The position numbers were made by a program, and so were the translations under genes. Of a DNA stretch of 64,000 bases, positions 1 to 30,597 are shown piece by piece (position 1 is the first letter of the stretch; each line of letters opens with the position of its first letter). Location of the stretch: the sequence record OP729297.1; one strand, 5' to 3'. Below the pieces are notes generated by a model that was not told the origin of the DNA, did not search any database, and saw only the letters and a list, made by a program, of their open reading frames with translations.

Positions 1-97
1 CTGATAAGGCTACGACCGCACATGTTATTTCTCCAATAACTCTACGTCAGCACTACTTGCCAACATATAGAAATTAGAGAGCAGGCTAAGAATATTC

Positions 98-865
98 TTA
101 AAAGCCCTTGAAGTCCCTGAGGATGTATTCTTCAAAGAATAGGCGTCGGAAGTCTTCGTGGAAGATGATACGGTGGTTCGTTTTGAACTCGCAGTCATCA
201 CACGCGAGTGACCACAGCAGGTTATGCACTTTGGATAGCAGGTAGTCCGTACGCACACAGAAGAACTCCAGGCCGATCGTAATCGTTTCGGCACGAAGCT
301 CGTGGTATTGTTGATTGCTTTCGCACTTCATCAGTGCATCAAGGCTTACAGATGAAACCAAACCGCTGCGATATTCAATGTTGCGTCCACCCATGTGCAT
401 AAATGAAGCAGCGCCGTAGTCAAGAATAGCCTGCCACAAGTCCGGGTTTGAATACACCAAAGACAGCTCACTGTTTTTGAGGTCAGTATCACCTTCTTTC
501 TGTTTCAGGCTGTCTATGATTTCTAGGACGCGTGTGGCAACCTTGTTCATTGTGTCGCTGCAAACATACGTTAGATCGTGCATCAACACAACGTGGGCGC
601 CAGCGTAAGTATAGTCACGATGACTGATAGGCGGTTCGTCCACACCAAAGCAAATGAGAGTGTGTGGCAGATTGTTTGTATTCAGTAACTGCTTAACGTA
701 GGCTTCGACTACACGTTTAGAAGTGCCGATGATCACGACAGGCTTTGACGTGCCGTAATTCAAGCCATTGTTTTCCAGTGCTCGCGCCATATGGCACAGA
801 GAACGGACGTAAGGGTCAAACGATCCCATAGCAGGGATATACATATGTTGTACACGAGATTTCAT
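98..865 (-). CDS. hypothetical protein (255 aa)
   Basis: ORF track 98..940; start moved to ATG 865, which has a strong RBS (GGAGG-CTATT-ATG) and avoids overlap with the upstream gene. Confidence 0.7.
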   Translation of the reverse strand: MKSRVQHMYIPAMGSFDPYVRSLCHMARALENNGLNYGTSKPVVIIGTSKRVVEAYVKQLLNTNNLPHTLICFGVDEPPISHRDYTYAGAHVVLMHDLTYVCSDTMNKVATRVLEIIDSLKQKEGDTDLKNSELSLVYSNPDLWQAILDYGAASFMHMGGRNIEYRSGLVSSVSLDALMKCESNQQYHELRAETITIGLEFFCVRTDYLLSKVHNLLWSLACDDCEFKTNHRIIFHEDFRRLFFEEYILRDFKGF

Positions 866-911
866 AATAGCCTCCGGGCATAACGCCCATACATGGAGTT
901 GAGATAAAAAG

Positions 912-1934
912 TTATTCTGCGATAGTGCCACGAACAACACATGGTGGTACCCAGCGTGACTTTAATTCACGCTCACCCTTTAAAGGTCCGTACCAATAAC
1001 TATGATGATGGCCTCTGCGTATATGCGCACGACGACCATTCGATTCATGAGATTTCACTTCGCTTTCATAGGTACGAATTTCATTAAGCAACTCTGTACC
1101 CACATTCCACTCACGAACATCACGAACAGGAATGATTTTGTAACTGTTACCGCTACGTCTAGGTTTGAGTGATTTGATTCCTCCTTTATAGATATTGTCT
1201 ACCTGTGATGCAACGAACAGCAGCACGTTAACGACAGGCTTCATGAGAGCCATGACAGCTCCAGTGATCTCAGGGCCGTTGTCAGAATTACTGTCAACAC
1301 CAGTCGCGCCGTTAGCGCCTACAAGGTGCATGAACCAATCGAAACCATCAGACAGTTCCATGTCTTTGGTAATGTCGAATATGATATAGAGCGACATTAC
1401 TTGATTGCCTGTGCCATCATTATACACACCGAAGCAGGACAAGCTCAGGTGAGTTGCCTCTTGGTAGTTAACGTATGTTGCCCAGAACCCTTCAATATCA
1501 ATTTCGTATTTGTTACCGGTCGCGGCATGTTTGTAGTCGAGTGTGAACACACAATTGATCCACTGCGACCAGTGAGGTAATTGACGCAGCGTAGAGGTCG
1601 GCAGCACTTTAGGTGCATCACCCTCAATCAGATGCGGCCACAGTTCTTTCTCAATCACAAACGATGCTTTCGTAAAAGACCAAACGTAATGCGTATAGGT
1701 CGCTGACGAAATAAACATTAGCTGACGTGCTATGTCAGGATTGATCTCCGTTGGAATCATATTAGCCCAACGAACAAACTCTTCCATAGGGATTCCTAGG
1801 GAAGGGAGTTTACCGTTCTTGTTTTTCAGGTACTTAGTGAAGTGATCGGTTATCTTTGATCGTGCTGCACCACGAGAGGCAGACTCCTGCAGGTATGCCT
1901 CATGTACTTGGACGAATGTTGCTTTTTCAGACAT
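912..1934 (-). CDS. AcrVA2/FinQ-family protein (anti-CRISPR AcrVA2-like), 340 aa
   Basis: Start at ATG 1934 (GGAG RBS). Colinear motifs match AcrVA2 as I recall it: PTSTLRQLPHW, IEGFWATY, VLLFVASQVDNI, VGTELLNEIRTYES, RAHIRRGHHHSYWYG, RWVPPCVV. Confidence 0.75.
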   Translation of the reverse strand: MSEKATFVQVHEAYLQESASRGAARSKITDHFTKYLKNKNGKLPSLGIPMEEFVRWANMIPTEINPDIARQLMFISSATYTHYVWSFTKASFVIEKELWPHLIEGDAPKVLPTSTLRQLPHWSQWINCVFTLDYKHAATGNKYEIDIEGFWATYVNYQEATHLSLSCFGVYNDGTGNQVMSLYIIFDITKDMELSDGFDWFMHLVGANGATGVDSNSDNGPEITGAVMALMKPVVNVLLFVASQVDNIYKGGIKSLKPRRSGNSYKIIPVRDVREWNVGTELLNEIRTYESEVKSHESNGRRAHIRRGHHHSYWYGPLKGERELKSRWVPPCVVRGTIAE

Positions 1935-1947
1935 AGAAACTCCCAGA

Positions 1948-1982
1948 CAAAAAAAAAATGGGGAGGCCATCCGGCTCTCCCC
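1948..1982 (-). terminator. intrinsic terminator
   Basis: Minus strand GGGGAGAGCC-GGAT-GGCCTCCCC followed by A and a long T run. Confidence 0.7.
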
Positions 1983-2030
1983 TGCCCAAGTCGGGCTAGA
2001 CTACACACAGCATTTGTGTTCGGTTGGTGA

Positions 2031-2732
2031 TCAATATTTACAGATTACGTTCATGAAGTAGTAGCGCATTAAGTCTGGATGCAGGATGCAGTTCTTTTTA
2101 TATCTACGCAACATCTGAATGACTTTATGCAGGTCTTCATGGTGCATGAACATGAAGTCACGACCAAACGTATAGGTTGTCGCATGGATCTCCTGAACGC
2201 GCTTTTCGAAATCTGGGTCAATTGCCATAGACACAAAGTTGTCTACTGTGATGTTGGACTTTAGATCGAAGTCACCACAGGCCAGCTCAGGATTGCAGAC
2301 GTCCAAGAAGTTTTTAAACTGAGTGTCTCGAACAATCGCCAGAAGTTTCTCGATTGCCGGTTCGCCGTAGATAGTGATTTGAGTGTCGTTAGTATGTACG
2401 GTACGACCAAGCGCATCAAAGATGCCAGCCAGAGAACTGGCGAGTCTCTCCAAACTTATGTGGAATAGACTTTCAGACAGCACGATAGGAAGTTGTGGGG
2501 GCGCTGTATGACCACGGAAACTAACAACAGAATCGTATGCAGTACCGACAATGCTTGAAGGAATATCCCGGCGGAGAATAGAGTACAGTGCATCGTTAGC
2601 ACTACGTTCAGTGACGTCAATATAGAACAGCGTCTTGGTTGCAGCATCAGGCTGTTTGGCCTGACGTGCGTAGCCATGAATTAATCCATGCAGAGCTTCG
2701 GTAGGTAAAATGTTAGTCTGAATCTTTTTCAT
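2031..2732 (-). CDS. hypothetical protein (233 aa)
   Basis: ORF with GGAG RBS, co-oriented with neighbours. Confidence 0.75.
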   Translation of the reverse strand: MKKIQTNILPTEALHGLIHGYARQAKQPDAATKTLFYIDVTERSANDALYSILRRDIPSSIVGTAYDSVVSFRGHTAPPQLPIVLSESLFHISLERLASSLAGIFDALGRTVHTNDTQITIYGEPAIEKLLAIVRDTQFKNFLDVCNPELACGDFDLKSNITVDNFVSMAIDPDFEKRVQEIHATTYTFGRDFMFMHHEDLHKVIQMLRRYKKNCILHPDLMRYYFMNVICKY

Positions 2733-2742
2733 AAATCACTCC

Positions 2743-2793
2743 TGGCGCATTGCCTATCGAGTTAGGTTGTTTGCTTGTGGCGCATTGCCTATC
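2743..2793. repeat. 16-bp direct repeat TGGCGCATTGCCTATC x2
   Basis: Exact copies at 2743-2758 and 2778-2793 in the intergenic leader of the 2031..2732 gene. Confidence 0.85.
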
Positions 2794-2832
2794 AAGCGAG
2801 AGAATGTGGGAGGCATCCCTCCCACTATTGGT

Positions 2833-3261
2833 TTACAGTTTTACGCGGGCCGCGCTGTATGAGAGAATTGTGACACCCTCTTCAACATCGCTAACGTTTG
2901 CCACTGCAAGGCATGGCGCAACAGACTTGTCATTGACGACAACCTGTAGGCCGAGAATGCTGCCGACGTTACCAGCAGTGATATCTTCGACGCGAGCGAT
3001 AGGGTCGAAGAAGTTTTCCAGGCCGTTGGTAGAGAAGCCCGCCACCAGATCAAGAGTTACCAATACGATTCGGCGGGTATCAGGCGCAGACTCTTCTGGC
3101 AGTGCTGACTGCAACAGAGAATAGACTGTATCGACATTGAACTCAGGTTCGCCTTCAACGTTAGGCACGATAGTTGGTGTACGAACCTCACTACCGTCTT
3201 CTTCGTTGGTTGTCACTGTTTCCAGATTAAGGATATCAGCAGTATAGATTTGAGTACGCAT
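2833..3261 (-). CDS. hypothetical protein (142 aa)
   Basis: ORF with GAGGAG RBS. Confidence 0.75.
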   Translation of the reverse strand: MRTQIYTADILNLETVTTNEEDGSEVRTPTIVPNVEGEPEFNVDTVYSLLQSALPEESAPDTRRIVLVTLDLVAGFSTNGLENFFDPIARVEDITAGNVGSILGLQVVVNDKSVAPCLAVANVSDVEEGVTILSYSAARVKL

Positions 3262-3276
3262 TTGTTCTCCTCAAAC

Positions 3277-3303
3277 AAAAGAAGGGAGAGCCGAAGCCCT
3301 CCC
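3277..3303 (-). terminator. intrinsic terminator (UUCG loop)
   Basis: Minus strand GGGAGGGC-TTCG-GCTCTCCC-TTCTTTT just after the RecA stop. Confidence 0.8.
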
Positions 3304-3310
3304 GCGTTTA

Positions 3311-5830
3311 TTACTCGTCGTCATCGTCATCAGAAGTCTTCGCAGACTTACTGATAGCGTTCTTCAACATCTCGTTGCCTTTGGTAGACTGCACGAACTT
3401 GAAGCACCACAGACGCAGGCCAGCAGGTTTGACTTTCAGTTTCTTACACACGCCAACAACTTGCTCTTTGCTGCCGTTGATAAGAGTACGGAAGTCATCC
3501 CAGTCCATCTTAACGTCAGATGCGAGCGGGCATGGCGCCTTGATCTTGAAGCTCTTACGAGTGCCGTTGATCAGGCCGAGAGTTTTCAGGTAATGCCACG
3601 TATCGAACACTGGGTCGAAGCCACGCGCTTCACCGTTGCCGTCAGCTTCCCACAGACGTAACCAAGTCTGCTGGTTAGGGATGCCGCCCATCTTGTTCTT
3701 GATGGTCTTGGCTGCAATGAAACGGTAGCGGTCGGTACCACCTTCAACAGTTACAGACTTCTCACCAACGATACCCGGTGCGTCTTTCATTGTCGGCCAG
3801 CCCTGAGGCACAGCACGAGAAGCCAGACGAACACGCACGTCAGAGTTGTGGCTAACGAAACCGTTAGTGATCACAACAGACGTTTCTTCGACGTTCACAT
3901 CCCAGAACTCCACAGGATTGACCAGAGCTTTCAGCGTGAACGGAACAGGAACGATAGAGTTATCGAAGTTATACCAGTCGTCGATGTACGCCAGTTGCTG
4001 CATCAGCAGGTCGTACTGGTCATCGTAACCTTCAATCTGCTTATGCAGAATCAGGTCGAGAGCCTGTGCGAAGTCCTGCTCTGGCGCCAGATAGATTTTA
4101 TCCTGGCCAGTCTGCAACTGATAGTCCAGCACATAGCGAGTCAGTTCAGGGAACACGTCAGCGATCACAGTCAGCATCTGAGTCTGACGTTGACGGCTGG
4201 TGGCCTCGAAGCTGATACCAGCAAACGCACCGAGTTCTCCCTGCGCTACCGCCGCTTCCAGCTCGTGGTAGTTCAGGCCAGGGATATGCAGGCCGCTTTC
4301 GTCGGCGTAAGCATAGATACCGATAGACAGCAGGTGACGTGCCCACAGAGAGAACGTGTGAACATCGTCCTGATCGCCAATCATATCAGTGGTCAGTACG
4401 TTCGCAGCAAACGTAGTGTCGCCAGCAACGGCCAGAGGCAATTGTACGCTCTTGAAGTCAGCGTTACCTAGCATCTGATAAATCAGACTGCTTGACAGGT
4501 CGAACTCGTCAGGCACGTTCGCTTTCAGTTCTTTCACAGGCGGTACACGCAGACCTGCGTACTGGCCTTTCTGCTCTGGATATTGAGCAAGCTGGTTGAG
4601 CGTGTTCCACTCAGGACGCAGCACAGCCATACCATCAGCAGTCGTGTCATACATGAAGGTGAACTGACGATGTTCAGCGCTGCCTACATACGCATGACCA
4701 CCAGCGTTCAGTTCGACCGGGAACGGAGCGTCATCAACTTTCCACGCGCCATTGATCTTCTGGAAGCCGTCGAACGATTCGACCATAACTTCCGTACCAG
4801 CATCGATCAGCTCTTTGATCTGAGGTGCAGTCAGCACGCCGTGATCAGTACGAATCAGAGTATCGCGGTCGAAGCAATAGAACTTCAACGCGTCACCGCC
4901 AGGCTCATACTCAGGTGAGCCGAACATAACAGCAGGCTTCTGACGTAACTGGTTAACGCCAACGATGGTCATCATCTTACGACGCATACCACCACGGAAA
5001 CGTTTGATGCCGTCGGAGAACATACGCGCTTGCAGCGCCATTGCTTTCGAGCCTTCGTCATCATCGACCTGATCCGGCATCATTGCTGGATAGGAGTCAA
5101 CGATAACCATCGCCTGCATGTGTCCGTCTGGTGCAGGTACTTTGAACTGGTTGTTACGGCTGAACCATTTCTTGTCATACTTACCAGCCAGCTTCTTCGC
5201 GTTCTCTTTGTTGTTCTCAAAGATGTAGTACGCGGTACCGTCTTTCTCAACGATCTTATCTGGCAGACGACGACGCAGCATCGACATATAATCGAAGAAG
5301 CGCTCACCGTTGTCTGGTGCATAGTAACGGATCTTAGGCTTAACGATCCAGCTACCGTCTTCATCATCACGCACACCGAAGATAGTTTTCGGGTCAACGC
5401 GAACGCCGAACGTTTTCAACTGACCAGCAACGTACTCTGCGTCGGTTGAACCTTCGTAGTCAAACACTACGCTAATGCCAGAGTAATGCAGACGAATCAG
5501 GCTCGCCATAATACTCATGGTCATTGTTGACTTACAAGACTGCTCACCGCCGCTAAACGTGTACCAGCCACCAGGGACAATACCACCGGACAGGAACATG
5601 TCGAGTGCGAGACAGCCTGTTGAGATACGAGGTGCGTGACGCGCTGCATCCTGCGAACTTACTTTCGTTTTCTTTTCGATGCCATCAAGAACATCGTCCA
5701 TCAAACTAGCCAGGTCAAAGCCCATGACTTCTACGCCGCCAACATCATCGGCCGCGAATGCTTTACCTTTCTTGGCTTTGGTTTTACCTTCGGCTTCTTT
5801 TTCAGCCTTGATTCGTTTCGCTTTAGCCAT
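3311..5830 (-). CDS. recA: RecA/UvsX-like recombinase, intein-containing (839 aa precursor, 495 aa spliced)
   Basis: RISTGCLALDMFLSGG, P-loop GGEQSCKST, IVDSYPAM, MALQARMFS, NQLRQK, GGDALKFY, KTIKNK. Confidence 0.92.
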   Translation of the reverse strand: MAKAKRIKAEKEAEGKTKAKKGKAFAADDVGGVEVMGFDLASLMDDVLDGIEKKTKVSSQDAARHAPRISTGCLALDMFLSGGIVPGGWYTFSGGEQSCKSTMTMSIMASLIRLHYSGISVVFDYEGSTDAEYVAGQLKTFGVRVDPKTIFGVRDDEDGSWIVKPKIRYYAPDNGERFFDYMSMLRRRLPDKIVEKDGTAYYIFENNKENAKKLAGKYDKKWFSRNNQFKVPAPDGHMQAMVIVDSYPAMMPDQVDDDEGSKAMALQARMFSDGIKRFRGGMRRKMMTIVGVNQLRQKPAVMFGSPEYEPGGDALKFYCFDRDTLIRTDHGVLTAPQIKELIDAGTEVMVESFDGFQKINGAWKVDDAPFPVELNAGGHAYVGSAEHRQFTFMYDTTADGMAVLRPEWNTLNQLAQYPEQKGQYAGLRVPPVKELKANVPDEFDLSSSLIYQMLGNADFKSVQLPLAVAGDTTFAANVLTTDMIGDQDDVHTFSLWARHLLSIGIYAYADESGLHIPGLNYHELEAAVAQGELGAFAGISFEATSRQRQTQMLTVIADVFPELTRYVLDYQLQTGQDKIYLAPEQDFAQALDLILHKQIEGYDDQYDLLMQQLAYIDDWYNFDNSIVPVPFTLKALVNPVEFWDVNVEETSVVITNGFVSHNSDVRVRLASRAVPQGWPTMKDAPGIVGEKSVTVEGGTDRYRFIAAKTIKNKMGGIPNQQTWLRLWEADGNGEARGFDPVFDTWHYLKTLGLINGTRKSFKIKAPCPLASDVKMDWDDFRTLINGSKEQVVGVCKKLKVKPAGLRLWCFKFVQSTKGNEMLKNAISKSAKTSDDDDDE
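3845..4876 (-). mobile_element. intein (344 aa) in RecA
   Basis: Starts CFDRDTLI (block A, Cys1), ends ITNGFVSHN followed by Ser+1; removing it restores GGDALKFY/SDVRVRL. Confidence 0.92.
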
Positions 5831-5851
5831 TTGTGCTATAGTCCAGATTGA

Positions 5852-5879
5852 GAAAAGAAGGGGCAGCCTAAGCTACCCC
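5852..5879 (-). terminator. intrinsic terminator
   Basis: Minus strand GGGGTAGC-TTAG-GCTGCCCC-TTCTTTT after the SSB stop. Confidence 0.8.
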
Positions 5880-5887
5880 GTTACCGA

Positions 5888-7129
5888 TTACTTTTTCTTT
5901 TTCTTTTTCTTCTTCGGCGCGTCGTCATCATCGTCATCAGAAGATTTCTTTTTCTTCTTCTTATCGGATGATTTCACCTTGTCAGAAGATTTCTTTTTCT
6001 TCTTCTTAGGTGCATCGTCTTCGTCGTCGTCATCATCGTCCGACTTCTTAGACTTCTTAGACTTCACCTTCGAGGACTTTTTCTTTTTCGAAGGACGATC
6101 GTCATCATCGTCTTCGTCATCGTCATCTTCGTCATCGTCTAACAGCTTACGAGACTTAGACGCTTTTGACTTCTTGGACTTGGATGGACGGTCATCGTCG
6201 TCATCTTCATCCTCGTCGTCATCGTCATCGTTGCGACGTTTTTTCTTGTCTGCCTTGCCGCCTTTCTTCTTGCGGCCCAGCGCCATGTCATCGTCGTCAT
6301 CGTCTTCGTCATCATCACCATCATCGTTGGTGTTGACACCGATAACGTCCATCTTTTTGAAGTCTGCCATAGCGGCGGCTTCATCCAGACGACCCAGCAT
6401 GTCGTAGATTTCGTTCCAGTTGTCGAAGTCCCAGGTCAGGTAACCCTTTTCTTCTTCGGTCAGCGGAGTGTGATCGCCACGTTCGATGGTGTAACGCTCG
6501 GCCGGAGATTTTTTGGCGTTGTATTTGATTTCAATATCGCAGCCATACTTCGGATGGTTAACCTGGAACGCCTGCTTAGACTTCTTACCAGACTTCTTAT
6601 CTTTGACCGTGTGAATGTTACGTTCACCCAGCTCGCGGATTTTGCCTGCCAGAGAGTTAGACAGCGGAATACACATAACAGGAGTCCAAGACTCACTGCC
6701 CATTTCTTTCTTGCCTGTCTTCTGCTCTTGCTTAGTGAGCTTAGGCATTTTACGCGGTGCAGCAGCCTGCTCGTCACGAATGATTGCCTGTGCGTACCAC
6801 TTATAGTCGTACTGCGCTGGCGCACCAGATTCGTCGTTACCGTGAGCGATACCACAGTACGGACACTTCATACCGTTCAGAGGTTTGTTCTGATTGTCCG
6901 GGTCGAAGCTAACGCACATGCGCGGGATTTTGATCTCTTTGTCTTTATCTTTGCCGCCCATGATCTTGATCCAGTGCTTCTTGATTGGAAGCAGGTCAAG
7001 GTCAAGCAGACGAATTGATACCCAGTTGCCGTTTGCTTTCTTCGAAAGAGGGAAGATTTCAAAGATCTCTGACTCACGCAAGCTATCGCGCTTGCTGTTG
7101 TCTTGAATGTCACCAAATCCACGTGCCAT
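5888..7129 (-). CDS. probable T4 gp32-like single-stranded DNA-binding protein with long Asp/Lys tail
   Basis: Adjacent to recA; IRLL..HW, CPYC, HPKYGCDIEIK resemble phage gp32-type SSBs; ~150-aa D/E/K/S C-terminal tail. Confidence 0.65.
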   Translation of the reverse strand: MARGFGDIQDNSKRDSLRESEIFEIFPLSKKANGNWVSIRLLDLDLLPIKKHWIKIMGGKDKDKEIKIPRMCVSFDPDNQNKPLNGMKCPYCGIAHGNDESGAPAQYDYKWYAQAIIRDEQAAAPRKMPKLTKQEQKTGKKEMGSESWTPVMCIPLSNSLAGKIRELGERNIHTVKDKKSGKKSKQAFQVNHPKYGCDIEIKYNAKKSPAERYTIERGDHTPLTEEEKGYLTWDFDNWNEIYDMLGRLDEAAAMADFKKMDVIGVNTNDDGDDDEDDDDDDMALGRKKKGGKADKKKRRNDDDDDEDEDDDDDRPSKSKKSKASKSRKLLDDDEDDDDEDDDDDRPSKKKKSSKVKSKKSKKSDDDDDDEDDAPKKKKKKSSDKVKSSDKKKKKKSSDDDDDDAPKKKKKKKK

Positions 7130-7168
7130 TGTTGTTCCTCAATATTGAGTTTGCTCTTGTGTGAGCAT

Positions 7169-7177
7169 TGTTTACAG
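7169..7177 (-). promoter_or_regulatory. class A promoter motif CTGTAAACA
   Basis: Recurrent motif, 40 nt upstream of the SSB start. Confidence 0.6.
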
Positions 7178-7179
7178 TT

Positions 7180-8217
7180 TTAGGCTAGCCCTTGAGCCTG
7201 CATATGTTTGCGCATCTGTTCAAGTTCGAACTTATCGAACTCCTCACCAACGTCCATCGTTAGACGAGCAACGCCGAGTGGGTCTACGCGCTTAATAAGC
7301 AGCCTCAGTTTTTCGGTACGTCTTTCACTATCTACGTGATCTTCTAAGTGATGATGGTCACTCACTTTTTGATGTAGGGACGCGTCCGCACCTTCATCAG
7401 ATTCATTCGCAGGAGTATCGAGACTTACCGAGAAATTCAGAGAAGTGGTATCTTCACCTGTCGCCAGTTTCTTACGTTGAGTCTGGGGAATAGTGTACGC
7501 GATGCCGTATTCATGCTCGCTACTACTACAGGTTTGTGCGTTCAAGATCCACCACTTCGTATAACTCACAATCGCACCACGCGACGAGTCATACTTGTTG
7601 ATAGCCACGATGACGTTACGCAGGAAGTTCTGGCGCACGTCTTTGCTGTCGTACAGCTTACCGCGGTTCGTATCAACGTAGAATTTTGTTTGCTTGCTGC
7701 ATAGTCTATAGAAGTCAGCAACTACCGAGTGGAAGTATTCCATGAACTGCGGTAGAAGGTCATTCAGACGGCACAACGCGATAAAGAGTTTGGAACGAGA
7801 CTCTGCGCCAAACATCTTCACGTATGCGTTCAATCGTTTCGAATACGCTTCGCGCTTGATAGGGTCTTGCGTCGAAATGAATCCGCGATAGAGATCAACA
7901 TACGTCGCGTAGTATCGCTTAATTACATTTTCCAGGAAGACGTAGATGAAGTTGCGCTCCATTTTCAGTTCCTGGATATAAATCATTTTCTGATCACGAG
8001 GCACAGAGAGCGCCTTAATCAGAAGGCTAATCGCACGGTCACGCGTTTCTGCGTTATACGGCTTTCGCTTCTTATTCGACGTAATCATGTTCAACAGATA
8101 GGTCAGTTGCACATCGAATACGTTCGTGTTCTCAACAATCTCACGGAGGCAGTCGTGAAGCATGGTGTCCATGACGCTTTCTATCTGACCGCCTGTGAGA
8201 TTCGACTTATTGTTCAT
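7180..8217 (-). CDS. phage sigma-70-family transcription factor (regions 2-3, no clear region 4)
   Basis: DVRQN..AINKYDSSRG..SYTKWWI matches region 2.2-2.4 (D..Q..A..KFD..RG..Y..WWI); SVSLDTP is region 3-like. ATG 8217 follows an AGGTG RBS (track starts at GTG 8229). Confidence 0.75.
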   Translation of the reverse strand: MNNKSNLTGGQIESVMDTMLHDCLREIVENTNVFDVQLTYLLNMITSNKKRKPYNAETRDRAISLLIKALSVPRDQKMIYIQELKMERNFIYVFLENVIKRYYATYVDLYRGFISTQDPIKREAYSKRLNAYVKMFGAESRSKLFIALCRLNDLLPQFMEYFHSVVADFYRLCSKQTKFYVDTNRGKLYDSKDVRQNFLRNVIVAINKYDSSRGAIVSYTKWWILNAQTCSSSEHEYGIAYTIPQTQRKKLATGEDTTSLNFSVSLDTPANESDEGADASLHQKVSDHHHLEDHVDSERRTEKLRLLIKRVDPLGVARLTMDVGEEFDKFELEQMRKHMQAQGLA

Positions 8218-8249
8218 GGTCAAATACACCTGTTAGTTGCTTTGACTCT

Positions 8250-8258
8250 TATTTACAG
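8250..8258 (-). promoter_or_regulatory. class A promoter motif CTGTAAATA
   Basis: Recurrent motif upstream of the sigma gene. Confidence 0.6.
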
Positions 8259-8262
8259 ATTT

Positions 8263-8574
8263 TTAGATCTTCGTGAGGTCGTCATGTTGATCTTGAATCT
8301 CGGAGCCAGTCAGTTCTGCCTCAGGCTTACGCTGACCTAAATCTGCTGGTGGTTTAGTGCGTTGTTCTTCACGCTGCTCCTGTTCGCGTTCAGTGCGCTC
8401 TTTTTCCTTTTTCTCAATCTCTTCCTTGGGTGTGTCGATACCATATTCTTCTTTGATGCGCTGCTGGTCCTGTTGCTCCAGTGCGCGTTGCTGGCCATCG
8501 AGAGGCGGTTGTTTCTCCGACGTGTCCTGACGATCAACACGAATCTCGTGTGAAAGGCTTACAAAGATTTCCAT
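8263..8574 (-). CDS. hypothetical charged protein with MEIFVSLS leader (103 aa)
   Basis: ATG 8574 with GGAG RBS; shares the N-terminal tag with six other proteins. Confidence 0.75.
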   Translation of the reverse strand: MEIFVSLSHEIRVDRQDTSEKQPPLDGQQRALEQQDQQRIKEEYGIDTPKEEIEKKEKERTEREQEQREEQRTKPPADLGQRKPEAELTGSEIQDQHDDLTKI

Positions 8575-30510: not shown

Positions 30511-30597
30511 GGAGGTGATCCCAATCTCCTCGCTGACTACTGCGAGGTAAAATAATCGTAGTAGACTTAACAGTCGGGTGCATAGCGCGCCATCTAC

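Follow-up and report, generated by a model that had tools for sequence, protein, structure and literature searches.

What does an AcrVA2-like protein do in a lytic phage whose host has no Cas12a? This question is raised by one gene in a 64,000-nucleotide stretch of sequence record OP729297.1, referred to below as the window. The record is the 262,854 bp genome of Erwinia phage vB_Ea_2910A (2910A below), a lytic jumbo phage of Alexandravirus with Erwinia amylovora as its host, and record base 198,855 corresponds to window base 1. An earlier, sequence-only reading of the gene had stated that AcrVA2 blocks Cas12a biogenesis through mRNA decay, and had proposed that this copy may silence a different host gene by the same route. 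The stated mechanism agrees with two sources, according to which AcrVA2 acts on nascent Cas12a and triggers the loss of its mRNA (bioRxiv 10.1101/2022.11.29.518452; PMC13728456). The preprint also describes family members as typically found on plasmids and 'megaphages' without Cas12a, and suggests other targets for them, in line with the claim that homologs occur mostly where Cas12a is absent. In E. amylovora, the systems known are type I-E and, as a remnant, an I-F array, and no type V-A system is described (PMC9004355), in line with a host that lacks Cas12a.

The gene in question is the following.

912..1934, minus strand: AcrVA2-family gene, an intact open reading frame (ORF) of 340 amino acids with a TAA stop at 912-914

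In GenBank its product (WAK44554.1, coding sequence starting at 1934) is labeled "hypothetical protein". Read mechanically, the ORF could begin at an ATG further upstream, at 1970, but this longer reading is unlikely. The position 1934 is better supported, because it is the start of the GenBank coding sequence, close relatives share their first residue with it, GGGAG (1940-1944) is located 5 nt upstream of this ATG, and the ATG at 1970 belongs to the loop of a GC-rich hairpin (1960-1982), which is then followed by ten T (1949-1958).

The encoded protein resembles AcrVA2 along its entire length, and far more closely than chance would allow. Searched as a single sequence against all PDB chains with phmmer, it matched AcrVA2 (7ci1/7ci2) with E=2.3e-9 (query 72-335, chain 67-317 of 323), and the next matches had E>0.6. 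The family profile, made from 60 diverse members that are 16-56% identical to the window protein, matched AcrVA2 over chain residues 9-319 of 323 (E=4.5e-48). An exhaustive profile search detected 2,083 representative clusters at E<=1e-3 (clusters being counted at 50% identity) and 403 at E<=1e-10. A model built with AlphaFold2 on the 60-member alignment (predicted local distance difference test score, pLDDT, 92.2; predicted template modeling score, pTM, 0.90) was matched by Foldseek to AcrVA2 (7ci2_A, E=4.6e-12, probability 1.0, template modeling (TM) score 0.57-0.62), and no other fold in the PDB came under E=0.05, the best having E=0.057. Amino acid identity to AcrVA2 is 17-19%.

Annotation resources were less informative. 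Relatives 46-96% identical to the window protein carry a precomputed match to Pfam PF26125 ('AcrVA2-like'); the Pfam-A scan of the window protein itself gave two sub-threshold chance matches, the PF26125 model being seemingly outside the Pfam copy used. PHROG 6160 was matched with E=4e-72 and has no assigned function. PADLOC and NCBIfam scans of the window protein returned zero matches, a cluster look-up for ten family members yielded no informative names, and a word-index search of the named collection found 4-5 close relatives, even with the profile. On the phmmer, profile and Foldseek matches, the window protein is an intact, full-length member of the AcrVA2 family (PF26125), as had been claimed from the sequence.

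The second known member considered here, FinQ, was reached indirectly. A direct tblastn search of plasmids with the window protein gave four weak unnamed matches, FinQ not among them. A family member on an Aeromonas plasmid, itself found with the window protein, matched genes annotated 'finQ: protein FinQ' on plasmids of E. coli, Salmonella and Shigella (762 records). When the 363 amino acid FinQ ORF of an IncI1 plasmid from river-water E. coli was compared with the family profile, hhalign gave a probability of 100% (E=4.2e-49), and BLASTP against the window protein gave 23% identity (E=9e-15, residues 85-334). FinQ is therefore an AcrVA2 homolog, as the sequence-only reading had stated, and the profile and structure searches, on whose failure that reading would have been given up, gave significant matches. 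It was also observed that on E. coli plasmid NZ_CP091675.1 the RefSeq finQ coding sequence of 259 amino acids (1540-2319) lies inside the 363 amino acid ORF (1228-2319). The RefSeq start looks too far downstream, because the family profile aligns from residue 5 of the ORF.

Residues needed for AcrVA2 activity are known from the study of Marino et al. (bioRxiv 10.1101/2022.11.29.518452), in which W79A and D89A weakened activity, and H286A, R288A and H291A abolished the down-regulation of Cas12a mRNA and protein while binding was kept. In the phmmer alignment, where PDB chain numbering equals AcrVA2 protein numbering plus 1, these five residues (W79, D89, H286, R288 and H291) align with W85, E95, H304, R306 and H309 of the window protein. 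W85, P120, H304, R306, H309 and W328 are invariant in all 60 family members, and W85, H304, R306 and H309 are also invariant in 14 of 14 phage alleles. Column 95 holds Asp in 37 and Glu in 10 of the 60 members, with Glu in the window protein. In line with the six ordered motifs noted earlier, the invariant and near-invariant columns make up at least six collinear blocks (W85; P112/P120; G149; G279; H304-R306-H309-H311-G316; W328/P331). The AcrVA2 residues that contact the Cas12a peptide (E98, D129 and D195) could not be mapped confidently onto the window protein, the alignment of the beta region being too weak.

The motif AHIRRGHHH was found at residues 303-311, with H304-H311 encoded by nt 1002-1025, and its difference from the HWH form is real. 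Column 310 holds Trp in 45, Tyr in 7, Phe in 6 and His in 2 of the 60 members. His310 occurs solely in the allele class of 2910A, with Tyr in the other Erwinia jumbo-phage alleles and Trp in JA13, FBKp24 and AcrVA2. By sequence, the HHH variant is no evidence of altered chemistry, because the three essential residues are intact and column 310, which is not among the residues known to be essential, is a variable aromatic site.

Conservation is distributed unevenly along the protein, for which the following regions were distinguished.

1740..1934, minus strand: N-terminal helical region, residues 1-65, variable, with helices H6-17, H25-38 and H50-56 in the model
1575..1739, minus strand: conserved helix/loop region, residues 66-120, in which W85 and P120 are invariant and E95 occupies the position of AcrVA2 D89
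1281..1574, minus strand: central beta-sheet region, residues 121-218, with model strands E123-214, among the most variable
915..1169, minus strand: C-terminal module, residues 256-340, the best conserved region, strongly basic, containing H304-x-R306...H309

Identity to the other phage alleles was 0.27 for residues 1-65, 0.41 for 66-120, 0.28 for 121-218, 0.36 for 219-255 and 0.55 for 256-340, and the regions ranked in the same order in the broad family, where the beta region showed an identity of 0.13 and 17% gaps. Charge was also constant by region: in 14 of 14 phage alleles the C-terminal region is basic (isoelectric point (pI) 10-11, net charge +7 to +16) and the beta region acidic (pI 4.2-4.8). 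A summary of the 2026 paper of Marino et al. (PMC13728456) states that AcrVA2 associates with ribosomes and polysomes via its C-terminal part, binds the N-terminus of freshly made Cas12a, and recruits a cellular enzyme, not cutting the mRNA itself. The conservation pattern is consistent with a protein in which a variable reader is attached to a constant module that engages ribosomes; the C-terminal module is then the putative ribosome-engaging or effector part, and the beta region together with residues 1-65 a putative target-reading surface.

The gene lies downstream of a conserved block of replication and recombination genes, and all features listed here are on the minus strand.

7180-8217, minus strand: sigma-factor-like protein, conserved backbone (PHROG)
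5888-7129, minus strand: SSB, conserved backbone (PHROG)
3311-5830, minus strand: UvsX-like recombinase, conserved backbone (PHROG and Pfam RecA)
2833..3261, minus strand: hyp142, 142 amino acids, the third independently swapped cassette
2031..2732, minus strand: hyp233, 233 amino acids, upstream neighbor, an independently swapped cassette
1935..2030, minus strand: upstream intergenic anchor, conserved, with the hairpin 1960-1982 (also present in the predicted fold), T10 at 1949-1958 and GGGAG at 1940-1944
866..911, minus strand: downstream intergenic anchor, with a small conserved hairpin and GGAGG before the next gene
98..865, minus strand: hyp255, 255 amino acids, downstream neighbor, probably co-transcribed with the AcrVA2-like gene, with discrete allele classes of its own

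The PHROG matches of UvsX, SSB and the sigma-like factor are 97, 15004 and 17569. The gene order (sigma-like factor, SSB, UvsX-like recombinase, hyp142, hyp233, AcrVA2-like gene, hyp255) is common to Alexandravirus, Sasquatchvirus (Y3), Snuvirus (SNUABM_7), Yoloswagvirus and Rivsvirus (SNUABM_5), some of which lack a few of the small genes. By tblastn, one copy per record was found in 64 phage records (48 of Erwinia, 3 of Dickeya and 13 of Klebsiella or 'Serratia' jumbo phages), and the 64-kb window holds one family member. In Dickeya JA13, JA13-like metagenomic contigs and Klebsiella FBKp24, the homolog is found in a different neighborhood of small genes.

Comparison of the phages that share this order revealed that the AcrVA2-like gene does not follow its surroundings. 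Dickeya phage AD1 is 97% identical to the window proteins for SSB, 98% for UvsX, 93% for hyp233 and 95% for hyp255, but 32% for the AcrVA2-like protein. In SNUABM_3 the values are 94% (SSB), 93% (UvsX), 59% (hyp255) and 33% (AcrVA2-like), and hyp233 is absent, whereas in the more distant Y3 they are 83%, 78%, 53% and 56%, with 35% for hyp233. At the nucleotide level, identity to AD1 is 0.88-0.99 on both sides and 0.36-0.59 over positions ~900-2000, with a second drop over hyp142 (2801-3200). Among nine phages, pairwise identities of the AcrVA2-like protein and UvsX were uncorrelated (Spearman 0.07, p=0.70), in contrast to those of SSB and UvsX (Spearman 0.92). A gene of this family at a fixed slot beside uvsX, replaced as a whole cassette between near-identical phages, is new here.

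At a cut of 60% identity the alleles form seven classes, three of them within Alexandravirus with a mutual identity of <=36%. Within the 2910A class (SNUABM_17, SNUABM_32 and phB78) the ratio of nonsynonymous to synonymous substitution rates (dN/dS) was 0.05-0.10 overall and 0.02-0.08 in every region. Selection is thus strongly purifying in this class, the one for which dN/dS was computed, and the diversity lies between discrete classes; gradual positive selection as its source was rejected, given the low dN/dS in every region within the class.

The neighboring small genes behave similarly. In AD1, hyp142 is 50% identical while its neighbors are 93-98% identical, and hyp233 is 71% identical in SNUABM_33 compared with 98-100% for most other genes of the block, 30% in Alexandra, and absent in SNUABM_3. 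The genes hyp142, hyp233 and hyp255 each fall into discrete allele classes that assort independently of the AcrVA2-like gene. A fixed partner gene was rejected, since these three change alleles independently and some are absent in some phages. The stretch downstream of uvsX behaves as a plastic region, because its three small genes are each replaced independently. The intergenic sequences flanking the AcrVA2-like gene are themselves conserved across phages with unrelated alleles: the upstream anchor shows compensatory stem changes in Y3 and SNUABM_7, and the downstream anchor has a mean column identity of 75% in 8 phages of different allele classes. From this conservation, both stretches may serve as homology anchors for cassette exchange during co-infection.

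Taken as a whole, the data are best explained by a functional AcrVA2/FinQ-family member that probably silences a non-Cas12a target by an AcrVA2-like co-translational mechanism. In the proposed mechanism, the basic, conserved C-terminal module would engage translating ribosomes, the variable N-terminal and beta regions would bind a short stretch of one particular nascent polypeptide, and binding would lead to loss of that polypeptide's mRNA via a recruited cellular RNase. Cas12a would not be the target, given that type V-A systems are absent from the hosts. The silenced protein would be one that must be newly made after infection, i.e. an inducible or fast-turnover component of host defense, or a protein of a competing element, these two being about equally open. 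The deeply divergent allele classes would most likely differ in what they recognize, and the conserved flanking sequences would allow alleles to be swapped by homologous recombination in co-infected cells. That a host defense gene is silenced by this route is a reasonable suggestion, already made at the level of the family by Marino et al.

Several points weigh against this explanation. The target, ribosome binding and mRNA loss are attributed to the jumbo-phage homologs by homology at 17-19% identity, and His310 departs from the usual aromatic residue. The host defense version is weakened because, as Marino et al. note, silencing of new synthesis spares the defense proteins that a cell already contains at the time of infection by a lytic phage (bioRxiv 10.1101/2022.11.29.518452). 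Phages of almost all allele classes were isolated on E. amylovora, so that host species does not explain the allele diversity. Finally, all members of the lineage carry the gene, and it is part of a block for replication and recombination; a housekeeping role would fit this as well.

Such a role, in which the protein would be a phage regulator for shut-off of host mRNA or for the timing of phage genes in the replication/recombination module, with no arms-race target, would also agree with the strongly purifying selection and with the constancy of the slot near UvsX, SSB and the sigma-like factor in all Alexandra-, Y3-, SNUABM_7-, Yoloswag- and SNUABM_5-like phages examined. A housekeeping gene is expected to track the backbone, and this one does not (rho 0.07; 32% against 93-98%); moreover, the homologs of JA13-like and Klebsiella jumbo phages lie among small accessory genes elsewhere. 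This role is accordingly considered unlikely. More improbable still is a true anti-CRISPR directed against Cas12a and kept for hosts with type V-A systems. The homology to AcrVA2 with its essential residues intact would suit it, as would the tolerance of AcrVA2 for divergent Cas12a orthologs (bioRxiv 10.1101/2022.11.29.518452), but E. amylovora has type I-E and an I-F remnant only (PMC9004355), conservation is lowest outside the C-terminal module, with an overall identity of 17-19% to AcrVA2, seven mutually divergent allele classes are hard to square with a single conserved target motif, and most family members occur without Cas12a (bioRxiv 10.1101/2022.11.29.518452).

The alternative closest to the explanation preferred here shares its mechanism and differs from it in the target alone. 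The protein would be a weapon against rival mobile elements, as FinQ is for plasmids, and its target would be encoded by a satellite, an induced prophage or another phage in the same cell. FinQ, a plasmid fertility inhibitor that lowers the mRNA of F transfer genes, is a member of the family, and a mechanism acting on new synthesis only would leave the proteins of a rival element, which are newly made, fully exposed. Several deeply divergent alleles coexist in phages from one host species, many from one country, and for cassettes to be exchanged, co-infection must be frequent. No candidate target element was found, and the sequence does not separate this version from that of host defense; as a separate explanation it is somewhat doubtful. 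The preferred explanation, co-translational silencing of a non-Cas12a target, can be carried further, with the uvsX slot as an allelic series of polypeptide-specific mRNA silencers that have a constant C-terminal module, read different nascent proteins of host defense or of rival phages, prophages and satellites, and are traded at the intergenic hairpins. This extension is possible, and is put forward tentatively.

Among known systems, AcrVA2 of a Moraxella bovoculi prophage (PDB 7CI1/7CI2) is of the same family and fold over its full length, is of similar size (~322 amino acids, compared with 340 here), shares the activity Trp and the H-x-R...H residues, and is likewise phage-borne. Unlike AcrVA2, the window gene belongs to a lytic jumbo phage and not to a prophage, encodes a protein with 17-19% identity and with His in place of Trp at column 310, and is carried by a phage whose host, E. 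amylovora, lacks Cas12a; no AcrVA1-like gene or Aca-type regulator was recognized beside it in Pfam and PHROG scans. FinQ, the fertility inhibitor of IncI/F-like plasmids, is of the same family and, like the window protein, occurs in enterobacteria without Cas12a, and has been reported to lower the mRNA of a rival element's genes (bioRxiv 10.1101/2022.11.29.518452). It differs in being encoded on conjugative plasmids between trbA and pndA, and its N-terminal part is unrelated in sequence. The window protein is a relative of FinQ and not FinQ itself, because it is encoded in the genome of a lytic jumbo phage, with recombination genes on one side and small phage genes on the other.

Two earlier reports concern phages more directly. 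ORF43 of Shewanella phage vB_SbaS_Y11 is an AcrVA2-like gene in a lytic siphovirus (PMC10846135), and Al-Shayeb et al. found proteins clustering with AcrVA2 in metagenomic huge phages (PMC7162821). The hosts in these reports carry type I systems or are without Cas12a, which is also the case here. Those reports came without a comparative analysis of the locus, and the Erwinia and Dickeya copies are annotated 'hypothetical protein'; none of these phages appears among the entries listed from the ortholog table of Marino et al. The plasticity of the locus has a different parallel. Large lytic phages of the T4 type exchange cassettes in hyperplastic regions, where conserved intergenic stem-loops enclose variable accessory genes and the remainder of the genome is conserved, as in the present case. 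The slot described here differs in that it is always occupied by one protein family, so that alleles and not unrelated genes are exchanged.

The neighbors gave few functional clues. For hyp233, zero family matches were found, and hyp255 had zero sequence matches in Pfam, PHROG and the PDB. The model of hyp255 (pLDDT 84.6) shows two alpha/beta domains with a weak likeness to the SF2 RNA-helicase core (Foldseek E ~5e-5, TM score 0.2-0.33), and no canonical Walker A motif was seen in the protein. As a recognizable counter-defense protein hyp255 was rejected, the likeness to a two-RecA-domain fold being weak and generic (TM score at most 0.33), and no conclusion was drawn; a helicase-like protein beside a trigger of mRNA decay would be intriguing, but the likeness is not interpretable as it stands. 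The UvsX-like recombinase has 839 amino acids, about twice the usual length, its RecA domain being split by an insertion of ~450 amino acids. All relatives have a UvsX-like protein of 830-853 amino acids, and the coding sequence of SNUABM_17 is 3,576 nt long. By eye the insertion is intein-like, beginning with Cys and ending with His-Asn followed by Ser; an intein was rejected, since Hint and intein Pfam models gave zero matches. The C-terminal end of SSB (5888-6330, minus strand) is a low-complexity tail of alternating poly-Asp/Glu and poly-Lys blocks, made of about four imperfect repeat units of 84-93 nt (repeat families D1 and D3).

Over window positions 1-8400, a GC-rich hairpin with a T-run was observed in nearly every gap between genes (e.g. 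5860-5879, 3284-3303, 2806-2825 and 1960-1982), and terminator-like sites numbered 19 compared with 6.7 expected. A 49-nt hairpin element (family D2) recurs at 30579, 44481 and 60956. With regard to a promoter of the AcrVA2-like gene or the timing of its expression, no claim is made; the conserved motif upstream of it has a single occurrence in the window, and no enrichment of sigma-70-like sites was seen.

Outside the conserved slot, ASCH-domain and BrxR-type winged-helix genes precede the AcrVA2-like gene of JA13-like jumbo phages (stretches 5848-7472 and 6001-7566 of two JA13-like loci), and a gene for an HD-domain (ppGpp synthetase/hydrolase-like) protein follows it directly; judged by these domains, the neighborhood looks like one of host-takeover or counter-defense genes. 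The Erwinia jumbo phages considered here belong to a group related to PaBG and Lu11 (PMC7412058). A viral structure library added homologs from the phiKZ-like Erwinia phage RisingSun and several siphoviruses. The RisingSun homolog (BFVD A0A223LH45) is named 'putative mycothiosynthase' and looks misannotated, and a homolog with 51% identity, filed under a Raoultibacter metagenome-assembled genome on a 9-kb contig, probably comes from a mis-binned phage contig.

To our knowledge, AcrVA2 is the first bacterial example of gene silencing through recognition of a nascent protein. Its family is large, and most members have no Cas12a around them. The family and the suggestion of non-Cas12a targets were known already; what is added here is the allele-swapping pattern as a natural comparative system, in which cultured lytic jumbo phages with genomes that are near-identical except for the AcrVA2-like allele offer a comparison for targets and for rules of recognition. 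If the slot does hold an allelic series, near-isogenic pairs such as 2910A and AD1 would be a ready-made system for finding non-Cas12a targets. Erwinia jumbo phages are already studied for the biocontrol of fire blight, and a gene for counter-defense or competition would be relevant to phage cocktails. Should the gene simply behave like other members of the family, about 50 genomes that label it 'hypothetical protein' would gain a useful annotation.

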